Below are positions 21,510-24,968 of a stretch of 64,000 nt of DNA, one piece after another. The DNA is taken from the sequence record PV231353.1. The stretch is one strand, 5' to 3'. The position numbers were made by a program, and so were the translations under genes. A model generated the notes under the pieces. The model had not been told where the DNA came from and ran no database searches. It saw only the letters and a list, made by a program, of their open reading frames with translations. Within the stretch, counting starts at the first letter, position 1; every line of letters starts with the position of its first letter.

Positions 21510-21772
21510 GCGGTGACCCCTTCGGCGCCGAGGGTCTTGCGCCACGTGGCGACATCGCCCAGGAGTTCGCCGCTCAAGAAGCGGTCCTCATAGATCGGCA
21601 CGTCGCCATCCGCCAGGGCCAGGAGGTCGAGTTGCGCGTCGATCCACTGTCGCTCGCACATATAGGGCTGGTGACGCGCGGTGGCGCGGATGCCGTACTG
21701 GAGGCGCCTGTCGTAGAGCGTCAGGCGCAACCCGGCGTGATCCCGCTCGATCCAGATATCAGGCCGCTTCAT
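21506..21772 (-). CDS. hypothetical protein
   Basis: 88 aa, in chain. Confidence 0.65.
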   Translation of the reverse strand: MKRPDIWIERDHAGLRLTLYDRRLQYGIRATARHQPYMCERQWIDAQLDLLALADGDVPIYEDRFLSGELLGDVATWRKTLGAEGVTA

Positions 21773-22787
21773 GGGCGGCCTCCTCGCCTTCTTCCTCGGC
21801 CGGCGCCAGGGTCGAGCCCGAGTATTCCTGGAGGTGATCGACCGCCTTCTGGGCCAGCGACGCGGCGGTGAAGATGAAGCGCTTGTCGCCCTTCAGGACC
21901 TTCAGCCACGAGGCGACGTAGGAGGCGTGATCCTCGCGGACCTCCGGGGTCAGGCCCAGCACCGCGCAGAGGAAGGCCGAGCCGAGTTCGGCGACCAGTT
22001 CCTCGGCGGCGTAGGCCTCGTCCCCGAAGCGCTTGCCGAACTCGCGGTTCAGGCGGTTCTCGCGACCGGTCCAGTGGACGAACTCGTGACCGAGGGTGGC
22101 GTAGTAGCTCTCCTCGTCGCGGAAGTCGTCGAACTGGGGCATCTGGATGAAGTCCAGGTGCGGCGAGAAGAAGGCCCGGTGCCCGCCGTGGCGCACCTCG
22201 GCGCCCGTGGCGGCGAAGAACTTCTCGACCGCCGCGTTACGCTCCAGGACCCGCTTGGCTTCCTCGGCGGGCGTCGCCGGGGCCGGAGCGGGCTTCTGGT
22301 AGAAGCGCTCGGGCAGGCCGTCGATCTGCTCGACGTTGAACACCAGATAGGACTTCAGGAACGGGATCATCCGCTCGACGTCCTTGCCGTTCGAGTCCTT
22401 CTCGGTCTTCTTGAACTTGGAGGCGTAGACGATCAGTTCGGATTTCTCGCCCTTGCGGACCTGACCGCCCAGGCCCCTGGCTTGGTTGTAGGTCATCCAG
22501 GTCGGGTTGGTGTAGCCGCGCTCCTGGGCGGCGGCCCACAGGAGGACCACGTTGATCCCGGTGTATCGCTGGCCCGTCACGCGGCGCGGATAGATCGCCA
22601 TGCCAGCCGAGGCGCCGCCGGGAGCCGACCACGGCTTCAACCAGGGACGCACGCCGGCGTCGAGCGCGGCGATGATCTTGTCGGTGATCTTGGCATACAA
22701 GTCGACCTTGACGGTCTCCGTCGAAGCTTTGCCGCTCTCCTTGGTGGAGCGCTTGGCCGGCTTCTTCTTGGCGGTGGTCTTGGTCAT
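21759..22787 (-). CDS. ardC: ArdC-family antirestriction / ssDNA-binding protein
   Basis: PW.KPW, YTGIN, WMTY.QA..LGGQVRKGEK, VFNVEQIDG, YYATL.HE..HWTG, Y..EELVAE. Confidence 0.9.
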   Translation of the reverse strand: MTKTTAKKKPAKRSTKESGKASTETVKVDLYAKITDKIIAALDAGVRPWLKPWSAPGGASAGMAIYPRRVTGQRYTGINVVLLWAAAQERGYTNPTWMTYNQARGLGGQVRKGEKSELIVYASKFKKTEKDSNGKDVERMIPFLKSYLVFNVEQIDGLPERFYQKPAPAPATPAEEAKRVLERNAAVEKFFAATGAEVRHGGHRAFFSPHLDFIQMPQFDDFRDEESYYATLGHEFVHWTGRENRLNREFGKRFGDEAYAAEELVAELGSAFLCAVLGLTPEVREDHASYVASWLKVLKGDKRFIFTAASLAQKAVDHLQEYSGSTLAPAEEEGEEAAHEAA

Positions 22788-22857
22788 CAGGGCCTCCTCG
22801 TTGTCGTCGAGGGGGTTCTAGCCGGCGACCGCGACCTTGTCAACACTCTCGCGCCAG
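22788..22857 (-). promoter_or_regulatory. promoter-leader cassette
   Basis: TGGCGCGAGAGTG-TTGACA(22838-22843)-N17-TAGAAC-CCCCTCG-ACGACAA-CGAGGAGG. Confidence 0.9.
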
Positions 22858-23054
22858 TCCTTAATCGCTTGGCGTTCCGCGTAGGTAGGCTGACGCTCCC
22901 AGCAGGCATACTGCTCCGAGCCACGGGTACAGTTCTCACGGATGATCTCGCCATCCGCGTTGTGCAGCGGCGTGTATGGCTTCTTCATGCAGTGCCCAAG
23001 ATACTGCCCCACCCAGGGGTGCCAGAGGCGGCAGTTGCCACAGACCTGCTTCAT
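22818..23054 (-). CDS. Cys-containing small protein
   Basis: CGNCRLW...C; reads into the promoter. Confidence 0.6.
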   Translation of the reverse strand: MKQVCGNCRLWHPWVGQYLGHCMKKPYTPLHNADGEIIRENCTRGSEQYACWERQPTYAERQAIKDWRESVDKVAVAG

Positions 23055-23293
23055 CAGGCGCTCATGATCGCCGCGCAGAGGATCATCACCACCAGCCCGC
23101 CGACGATCGGGCAGACGATCAGCGACATGCAGAACGTCAAGGTCGGGTGGTCGATGAAATAGAACAGGTAGGGAGGCGGTTGGGGCTGGTTGTAGAGAAC
23201 GGCCGCGCCCAGCGCCAGTGCGATGGCGCCGATGATCCAGGCCAGTCCATACCAGAAGGCTCCCTGGAGAAGCGTTTCGACTTTCGGGTTCAT
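23054..23293 (-). CDS. membrane protein
   Basis: Two hydrophobic helices. Confidence 0.7.
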   Translation of the reverse strand: MNPKVETLLQGAFWYGLAWIIGAIALALGAAVLYNQPQPPPYLFYFIDHPTLTFCMSLIVCPIVGGLVVMILCAAIMSA

Positions 23294-23610
23294 CGGCGGT
23301 TGTTCTCCAGGTCCCAGATGCGGTTGCGAAGGTGACGAATGGTCTCTTCCAGGTCGCGGACCTTGCGATAATGCTGGTCCTCGGTCTCCTGGGTGTTGCG
23401 CTTGTAGCGTCGCTCCCGCTCGTCCATCTCCGTCCGGAGCGGATTGGGGATCACGTCATGACCGTGGGCCATGCCGTAGTTCTCGAACGAGCCCTCGATC
23501 CCCTCGGCGATCCCCTGGCGCTTTTCCAGCGGGATGCCGTTCCAGAGGTCGAAGAGGCCTTCGCCGTCGAACGAGGCGTCCAGGCTTTCGAGCCAATAGT
23601 CAGTCGCCAT
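23290..23610 (-). CDS. hypothetical protein
   Basis: 106 aa, coiled-coil end. Confidence 0.7.
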   Translation of the reverse strand: MATDYWLESLDASFDGEGLFDLWNGIPLEKRQGIAEGIEGSFENYGMAHGHDVIPNPLRTEMDERERRYKRNTQETEDQHYRKVRDLEETIRHLRNRIWDLENNRR

Positions 23611-23983
23611 GAGATGAACCCTCCCCGGCCCGGACGCAATGGATCAGGCCGCCGTCGCCCTCTTCGGTGTAGCGGATGAGACTGCCGGCCTGGATCAACA
23701 TCTGGACCGTCTCGTCGCTCACCATGACGTCGCGCCCCGGCGGGCTCCAGGAGCGGCCGTCATCCATCAGGATCAACCCCTCGCGCCGGATCGCCAACGA
23801 CATCGCCTGGGCCGCGCGCTGGGCGGCGCTGGTCGCGCCCTCGACCAGGACCTTGAGGTCCTCGATCGGGAAGCACTCCAGGAACCGGGCGCGGACTTCC
23901 AGACGCTCGGCCGGCGGCAGGCGCATGATGTCGCCCACCAGGATGTCGGCGTATTCCTCGGCGGTCTTGGGGGCGTCGGTCAT
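23600..23983 (-). CDS. hypothetical protein
   Basis: 127 aa, in chain. Confidence 0.7.
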   Translation of the reverse strand: MTDAPKTAEEYADILVGDIMRLPPAERLEVRARFLECFPIEDLKVLVEGATSAAQRAAQAMSLAIRREGLILMDDGRSWSPPGRDVMVSDETVQMLIQAGSLIRYTEEGDGGLIHCVRAGEGSSHGD

Positions 23984-24237
23984 GACTTGAGGCTCTGGCA
24001 GGCGAACGTGATCACGTCGCCCAAGGTGTTGAAATCCTCAGGGAACTGAACCGGCTCGGGGACGGCGAAGTCCTCCTCCAGGCACATCATCAACTCGATG
24101 ATGTCCAGGCTGTCGAGGCCCAGATCATCTTCCAGCCGCAGGCCCTCGTCCATGTCGTCGAGGGTGTAGTGCCGATCGGTGATCGCGTGGGCGTAGTCGA
24201 AGGTCGCCGCCTTGATCTCGTCGCGCGTGAAGGTCAC
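23980..24237 (-). CDS. acyl carrier protein-like
   Basis: Acidic 85 aa; L.DDLGLDSLDIIELMM.LEEDF contains the phosphopantetheine Ser motif; T.GDVI helix IV. Confidence 0.85.
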   Translation of the reverse strand: MTFTRDEIKAATFDYAHAITDRHYTLDDMDEGLRLEDDLGLDSLDIIELMMCLEEDFAVPEPVQFPEDFNTLGDVITFACQSLKS

Positions 24238-24968
24238 GGCTCTCCCCCTGGTGTCGTTTCGGCGCTTCTAGCCCTGCCAAGCAGGGCCGTCAACACATCA
24301 GCGCCATGCCAGACCCAGGACAGGCTCAGGATGAGGTCGCGGTCCTCATAGGCGGCGCTGCGCCCGGTGATCACCTTGATCGCCGAGAGTGGCCCAAACC
24401 GCCAGAAGACGACCGTGCGCGAATCGTTGCGACCCGGCAAGTGCTCCAGCAACACGCGACGCTTGATCGCCAAATGCCGCTGCTCTCTGTGGAGGACGAG
24501 CGCGATCTTGCGCGTTGGATCAGACCCGAACCACCGACGCCAGTAGCCCGGATTGTCGATGTTCTCGAACAGCCGGCCGATCCGCTTGCTGACTGGGCGA
24601 AGCCCAGGCTCGCGGCGACGCACGCTCAGCGGCGGGAAGGTGCAGGGCGGCCATTCCGGAAGCAGGCGCAGACGCAGCCTCCGGAATTCCCACGCTGGCA
24701 TGGCGTTGTCCTTGGTGTTGTTGCACGCCACGCAGGCCGCCGCCAGATTGCTCTCGTGGTTCGATCCGCCTTCGGCCTTGGCCTCCAGGTGCTCGATCGT
24801 CACCTCGTCGGGCTCCAGCTTGCCGCCGCCTCGGCCGATCCGCCGACGATAGGCCATCTGCCCCGTGCAATAGGTGCAGAGGCCGCCCGATTCCAGGAAG
24901 AGGCGGTGACGGCGGTTGGGCGCGGCGGGCGGTAGCGGGTCTTGGACCACCACCTCAGATGAGGACAT
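24234..24968 (-). CDS. HNH endonuclease (McrA-like) with C-terminal extension
   Basis: CTYC ... TIEH......GGSN..SNL..AC..CNN.K. Confidence 0.8.
   Translation of the reverse strand: MSSSEVVVQDPLPPAAPNRRHRLFLESGGLCTYCTGQMAYRRRIGRGGGKLEPDEVTIEHLEAKAEGGSNHESNLAAACVACNNTKDNAMPAWEFRRLRLRLLPEWPPCTFPPLSVRRREPGLRPVSKRIGRLFENIDNPGYWRRWFGSDPTRKIALVLHREQRHLAIKRRVLLEHLPGRNDSRTVVFWRFGPLSAIKVITGRSAAYEDRDLILSLSWVWHGADVLTALLGRARSAETTPGGEP
24238..24308 (-). promoter_or_regulatory. promoter-leader cassette for the ACP gene
   Basis: TGGC-N6-GTG-TTGACG(24288-24293)-GCCCTGCTTGGCAGGGC-TAGAAG ... ACGACACC-AGGGGGAG. Confidence 0.8.

Follow-up and report, generated by a model that had tools for sequence, protein, structure and literature searches.

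Stand-alone acyl carrier protein (ACP) genes recur in many large phages as orphans and are routinely labelled auxiliary metabolic genes; annotated examples are found in phages of Prochlorococcus, Ralstonia, Cronobacter, Yersinia, Vibrio and Erythrobacter. The function of phage ACP genes has been stated as unclear (PMC5463345), and our search of the literature found no experimental work on any phage ACP. The closest described relatives of the gene considered here are those of the Caulobacter phages phiCbK (gp221), Magneto, Swift, Karma and Rogue, which carry the label "putative acyl carrier protein", and the phiCbK protein is listed in UniProt as "Carrier domain-containing protein". The ACP of Caulobacter phage RBC57, which its own record calls a "hypothetical protein", is thus already known, as orthologues have been annotated in close relatives since 2012; as a finding in this stretch of DNA it is ordinary, a correctly recognised and previously annotated gene. 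In the AcpS-ACP and FAS-ACP structures of cellular ACPs, it is through the acidic residues of helix II that AcpS and the Fab enzymes are contacted.

The DNA analysed here, which we call the window, is the first 64 kb of the 208-kb genome of RBC57 (PV231353.1), a phiCbK-type siphophage. The 2.4-kb stretch around the ACP gene matches the RBC57 record with 100% identity at the same coordinates and is 94-95% identical to the corresponding DNA of phiCbK, Magneto, Swift, Karma and the Ccr phages. The gene is located as follows.

23980-24237, minus strand: ACP gene, 85 aa, GTG start (open reading frame, profile, PDB and model evidence)

The preliminary description of this DNA had reported an acidic 85-aa ACP with the motif GLDSLD, to which we add the correction that the gene lies on the minus strand. 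Indeed, the protein contains 21 Asp and Glu against 5 Lys and Arg residues, with a pI of 4.05 and a net charge of about -16, and the motif reads G40-L-D-S43-L-D45, in which Ser43 (codon 24111-24109, minus strand) is the predicted phosphopantetheine attachment site. The protein matched PF00550 (PP-binding) with 26.2 bits, above the Pfam cut-off of 20.8, and a six-frame search gave 25.7 bits for the same family. Among the PHROG families, full matches were obtained to its own (14581) and to two others that bear the name acyl carrier protein. In the PDB, 119 sequences were matched at E<=1, and the best 60 of the 119 were nearly all named acyl carrier protein; the lowest E-value was 5e-9, and the top match was 4dxe, the ACP chain of the Staphylococcus AcpS-ACP complex. 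The top NCBIfam match, the FAS-type acyl_carrier model TIGR00517, scored 40.0 bits against an equivalog cut-off of 70.45, indicating that the protein is AcpP-like and no orthologue of AcpP.

The fold was modelled with AlphaFold (AF2) on a 7-sequence alignment (pLDDT 87.4, pTM 0.79), which replaced a poor single-sequence model (pLDDT 59.8). The model contains helices at residues 5-19, 43-57 and 72-84, and helix II starts at Ser43, while the segment of helix III is proline-rich (PEPVQFPED) and non-helical in the model. In a Foldseek search of the PDB, all of the top matches were ACPs, with TM 0.65-0.81 and a probability of 1.00, and the search of the viral database BFVD returned the model of the phiCbK protein (TM 0.97) together with about 30 other phage ACP-fold clusters. 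The alignment further revealed that D42-S43-L44 is invariant across all of the phage orthologues and the reference ACPs. Composition, PF00550 match, PDB matches and fold model agree with the initial identification, and the open reading frame at 23980-24237 is a real gene encoding a genuine member of the ACP family.

The ACP gene had also been placed behind a cassette promoter, and this assignment stands, since two phage genera share the -35 and -10 boxes while the spacer between them has diverged. The two elements ahead of the gene are as follows.

24265-24293, minus strand: RpoD (sigma-73)-type promoter-like element, a copy of the repeated promoter-leader cassette (consensus match, cross-genus conservation)
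24238-24264, minus strand: short ACP leader with ACGACAC and Shine-Dalgarno (sequence)

The promoter consists of a -35 box TTGACGG (24293-24287), a 14-nt spacer and a -10 box GCTAGAAG (24272-24265), on the minus strand and 27 nt upstream of the ACP start. The Caulobacter RpoD consensus is a -35 TTGaCgS and a -10 GCtANAWC, 10-14 nt apart (PMC8144410), and the boxes before the ACP gene match it, including the spacing. In both genera the distance from the boxes to the start codon is constant, and conserved boxes with a diverged spacer are the pattern expected from a working promoter. The leader contains ACGACAC (24257-24251), a degenerate copy of the cassette box CGACGACAAC, followed by the Shine-Dalgarno sequence GGGGGAGAG (24248-24240) and then GTG. 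The cassette as a whole has the layout GTGTTGACA, N15, GGCTAGAA, about 8 nt, CGACGACAAC, Shine-Dalgarno and start codon; TTGAC-N16-GCTANA occurs in 7 copies in the 64-kb window against 0.02 expected, and a looser scan of the window yielded about 10 cassette copies. At 22790-22813, a 22-24-nt piece of the leader behind the ardC promoter matches several other sites in the RNA-library contigs of a related phage, which fits a promoter-leader cassette recurring around the genome. The inverted repeat GGCCCTGC-TTG-GCAGGGCT in the RBC57 spacer was considered as a regulatory hairpin and rejected, because the repeat is not conserved in phiCbK. Leader RNA folded no better than shuffled sequences (z -0.35 to -0.84), and we claim no regulatory hairpin.

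The genes around the ACP gene, with the promoter that closes its unit, are arranged as follows.

24234-24968, minus strand: HNH endonuclease gene, upstream of the ACP gene; its TGA overlaps the ACP GTG (GTGA) (profile, alignment)
23600-23983, minus strand: 127-aa orphan gene (phrog_12903), ATGA overlap with the ACP stop (PHROG match)
22818-23610, minus strand: rest of the cassette, genes of 106, 79 and 78 aa, each overlapping its neighbours (open reading frames)
22817-22843, minus strand: next promoter of the cassette type, positioned ahead of the ArdC anti-restriction gene (21759-22787) and marking the end of the ACP unit (motif scans)

The preliminary description had called the ACP gene the first gene of its own transcription unit, which is right only in part. 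It is the first gene behind the promoter, but no terminator-like site was found nearby on the minus strand ahead of that promoter, so that transcription of the upstream 13-gene block is likely to read through into the ACP gene. Moreover, the ACP gene is translationally coupled to the four downstream genes, and the unit is therefore a five-gene cassette ending at the next promoter (22843). The ACP promoter is an internal promoter that heads this block of five overlapping genes. In RBC57 and phiCbK, this promoter is embedded in the final 23 codons of the HNH reading frame ahead of it rather than placed in an intergenic gap. The HNH gene of Rogue, RBC11 and BL10 instead terminates with a TAG immediately ahead of the -35 box, so that the GTGA overlap results from a secondary extension of the HNH frame. 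As a separate observation, the HNH reading frame in the phiCbK/RBC57 group has 23 codons more than its counterparts in Rogue, RBC11 and BL10 (24234-24302, minus strand).

As for the other members of the cassette, the 127-aa gene has the same distribution among the phages as the ACP gene, yet it is retained where the ACP gene has been lost. An Atlas look-up with the 127-aa protein gave matches at chance level only, and the UniRef label "Terminase small subunit", attached to the 122-aa copy in BL57, was set aside since it has no family or profile support. None of the 127-, 106-, 79- and 78-aa proteins matched an enzyme family or any other family in the profile searches. The 79-aa protein (within 22818-23293) is very hydrophobic and looks like a two-span membrane protein, and the 78-aa protein (within the same interval) is Cys-rich, with a CxxC motif and further Cys residues; both are orphans restricted to this phage group.

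Four RNA-library runs from one 2023 study contained 13-44 kb contigs of an about 94% identical relative that span the whole ACP region, and they are consistent with transcription of the ACP gene, although the contigs show no starts and may derive from DNA carry-over. About 7.5 kb upstream of the ACP gene (in CcrBL10), an XRE regulator, probably the TgrL orthologue, has hundreds of relatives of 45-67% identity in Caulobacterales genomes. The presence of these relatives agrees with the published work on TgrL (PMC10688885). In the time course of phiCbK infection, 41% of the phage genes peak by 15 min (PMC10688885).

The distribution of the gene was examined with several searches. While a word search for homologues returned 2 relatives only, the full HMMER search gave 960 matches at E<=0.001, among which the sole cluster above 50% identity was the ACP's own. 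The top HMMER scores are inflated by tandem-ACP synthases, and the nearest stand-alone relative, at 42% identity, is the syntenic gene of CcrBL10. With the CcrBL10 ACP as the query, tblastn detected orthologues in Rogue, RBC8, RBC11, RBC63 and BL64; the sequence searches found no ACP match in the more distant Colossus-type phages. The gene order HNH, ACP, 121-127 aa and about 106-107 aa is common to the orthologue-bearing phages of both clades. phiCbK gp221 (YP_006988093.1; JX100813.1, 147190-147447) and the Magneto, Swift and Karma orthologues are 96-98% identical to the RBC57 ACP, from which they differ by two to three substitutions only, and they share its position behind the HNH gene and its promoter. 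CcrRogue gp229 and the 90-aa ACP of CcrBL10, in the Poindextervirus group, likewise have RBC57-like synteny and promoter boxes, the DSLD motif and an acidic helix II, whereas they are only about 40% identical to the RBC57 protein (about 36-40% for Rogue), start with TTG and contain LRFDSLD in place of LGLDSLD. In Rogue and BL10, unlike in RBC57, the promoter is truly intergenic, as the HNH gene stops earlier.

At the about 40% identity that separates the two clades, the residues kept are D42, S43, L44, D45, an acidic residue at 48, M51, E54, E55, F57, P62, T71 and G73, and conserved features outside the generic ACP core include F/Y-A-H in helix I, LDD, LRL and F-P-D/E. The dN/dS of the gene is 0.11 between RBC57 and phiCbK and 0.30 between BL10 and Rogue, and the gene is under purifying selection in both clades. 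Nevertheless, two relatives no longer encode the protein. In Ccr5, residues 32-76 have been deleted in frame, and the 41 aa that remain do not include the Ser (L008, 2386-2511); BL57 has no ACP reading frame, with about 45 nt of unrelated sequence in its place and an altered -10 box (L007, 3395-3487). Both phages are viable isolates and both retain the 127-aa gene. The ACP gene has thus been lost at least twice, and it is accessory, not essential.

We compared the phage protein with the ACPs of the host. Caulobacter vibrioides DSM 9893 has two PP-binding genes, encoding AcpP and a second ACP. Against the host AcpP, the RBC57 ACP shows 43% identity over 46 aa (helices II-IV; E 1e-11), compared with 34% over 38 aa against the second ACP, and the BL10 ACP is likewise closer to AcpP than to the second ACP. 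These levels of similarity indicate that the phage protein is AcpP-like and that there was no recent capture from the host. The second, sphingolipid-type ACP was dismissed as a source of the phage gene, being less similar than AcpP. In the DSM 9893 genome, the second ACP gene lies directly upstream of a gene for a 404-aa PLP-dependent aminotransferase (L095, 1441-2919), a pair that resembles the serine-palmitoyltransferase cluster of sphingolipid synthesis in Caulobacter. In the alignment, helix II of the phage ACP reproduces the acidic pattern of AcpP, which the second host ACP does not have. The position aligned with Ile53 of the host AcpP, equivalent to the pocket residue Ile54 of E. coli ACP, is Glu in the phage ACP; together with the non-helical segment III of the model, this Glu could impair docking or the sequestration of an acyl chain.

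To find possible partners, six-frame profile searches were performed on the phage genomes, with control genomes positive in each search. No PPTase and no second PP-binding domain was detected in RBC57 and phiCbK, the two genomes covered for these families, while the PPTase of the host control genome was found. Similarly, the profiles of adenylation enzymes, ketosynthase/KASIII, FabD, SDR, hotdog thioesterase, PlsC-type acyltransferase and GNAT gave no match in RBC57, phiCbK and Rogue; PF01648, PF00501, PF01553 and PF00583 remained without a match at E<=1 in the genomes searched. A carrier dedicated to a PKS, NRPS or acyl-transfer pathway would be expected to share its genome with a PPTase, adenylation enzyme or acyltransferase of that pathway, and none was found. 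The initial remark that the window contains no PPTase or FAS/PKS genes can thus be extended to the whole 208-kb RBC57 genome and to phiCbK, and for the FAS/PKS genes to Rogue as well. MukB, mentioned there as a partner of E. coli ACP, is irrelevant for Caulobacter, which uses SMC instead.

We tentatively favour the explanation, to which we give slightly less than an even chance, that the protein is an early carrier, brought into the holo form by the host AcpS and engaging the clients of the host AcpP through helix II, with either a productive or an inhibitory outcome. The host-RpoD-type promoter suggests that the ACP would be expressed in the early programme. Since the phage has no PPTase, the conversion to the holo form on Ser43 would most likely be performed by the host AcpS. 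The AcpP-like acidic helix II could then dock on the host enzymes of fatty-acid and lipid synthesis that normally take AcpP, and the phage ACP would thereby supplement or redirect the acyl-ACP metabolism of the host during infection. The early timing, the modification by AcpS, the docking on AcpP partners and an outcome that is productive rather than inhibitory are what we infer for this scheme, and the conservation of the Ser and of all of the acidic helix-II residues of the host AcpP favours a protein that truly docks on AcpS and the AcpP partners. Against it stand the score below the AcpP equivalog cut-off, the remodelled helices I and III, the Glu at the pocket position and the viability of Ccr5 and BL57. 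Furthermore, the host ACP is abundant and stable, so that a simple "top-up" role is not obviously useful.

Several of these observations have been weighed for other explanations as well, among them the decoy and acyl-donor ideas of the preliminary description. One is that the protein acts as a decoy or inhibitor, a mimic of the AcpP recognition helix that is strongly expressed early and titrates AcpP-binding proteins instead of carrying acyl chains; AcpS, the glycerol-phosphate acyltransferase or PlsX, and SpoT are the candidate targets, and either host membrane growth or the stringent response would then be blocked. This we regard as rather unlikely, although the acidic residues are retained in helix II whereas helix III and the pocket position have moved away from AcpP, no partner enzyme was found in the phage genomes searched, and the gene belongs to the early host-takeover region, with ArdC one cassette further downstream. 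In E. coli, ACP binds SpoT, and an excess of apo-ACP is toxic because it inhibits glycerol-3-phosphate acyltransferase, while for Caulobacter a SpoT-ACP link is a candidate only. The decoy gains from the remodelled helix III and the Glu at the pocket position; however, the strictly conserved Ser speaks against it, since DSLD is invariant at about 40% identity, though a pure apo decoy would not need this residue, and the natural losses in Ccr5 and BL57 indicate that the ACP is not required. A related proposal, unlikely in our judgement, is that the protein is an evolved mimic of AcpP in which the prosthetic site and the recognition helix are kept and helices I and III are remodelled, and that it may capture one host client early in infection (SpoT, AcpS or an acyltransferase), thus uncoupling lipid synthesis or starvation signalling. 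If that proposal were true, the orphan ACPs that recur in large phages would for the first time have a function assigned to them.

Alternatively, the ACP might serve a pathway of the phage itself and hand an acyl or aminoacyl group to the 127-, 106-, 79- or 78-aa cassette protein or to another orphan phage enzyme. The ATGA coupling to the 127-aa gene, with which the ACP gene shares an identical distribution and a similar divergence across two genera, and the clade-specific residues outside the ACP core (F/Y-A-H, LDD, LRL and F-P-D/E) would fit such a carrier. The idea is weakened by Ccr5 and BL57, which retain the 127-aa gene after loss of the ACP, as well as by the cassette proteins, none of which matches an enzyme family, and by the three phage genomes, in which no adenylation, KS, acyltransferase, GNAT, thioesterase, SDR or FabD domain was found. 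In Ralstonia phage RP13, moreover, the ACP gene is followed by an unrelated gene, and the idea of a partner common to phage ACPs was set aside. We consider a pathway of this kind quite improbable. Very improbable, finally, is that the gene is a neutral passenger, a cellular ACP captured long ago that no longer plays a part in infection. Two losses in viable phages, and the searches in which no partner genes were found, would be in line with such a relic, but it is contradicted by the dN/dS values of 0.11-0.30 in the two clades and by the conserved promoter; the exact position, the gene's own promoter and its Shine-Dalgarno sequence have been kept, and the catalytic motif persists at about 40% identity.

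As compared with the known systems, the phage ACP is like AcpP of bacterial type II FAS (TIGR00517; C. vibrioides AcpP) in its size, its acidity, its fold and the Ser at the N-terminus of helix II, and the AcpP residues D35, D38, E41, E47, E48 and M44 (E. coli numbering) each find a counterpart in the phage protein. To judge from this alignment, the ACP of the phiCbK group appears to keep exactly the residues for docking on AcpS and the AcpP partners. It differs from AcpP in that its N-terminal third is unalignable, helix I is about 7 residues longer, a proline-rich segment replaces helix III and the gene lies outside any fab operon. The phiCbK group is well suited to the question of function, as it combines a tractable host, the natural knock-outs Ccr5 and BL57 and a published infection RNA-seq series. 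The ACPs of the other large phages, namely PHROGs 5934/4154, Prochlorococcus P-HM1 and P-HM2, Ralstonia RP13, Cronobacter GAP32, Yersinia fHe-Yen9 and Erythrobacter R6L, are also orphans amid hypothetical genes without a FAS or PKS partner, and are annotated as auxiliary metabolic genes. However, they are only 30-35% identical to the RBC57 ACP, belong to separate PHROG families and have unrelated neighbours, and they and the ACP of the phiCbK group were probably acquired independently.
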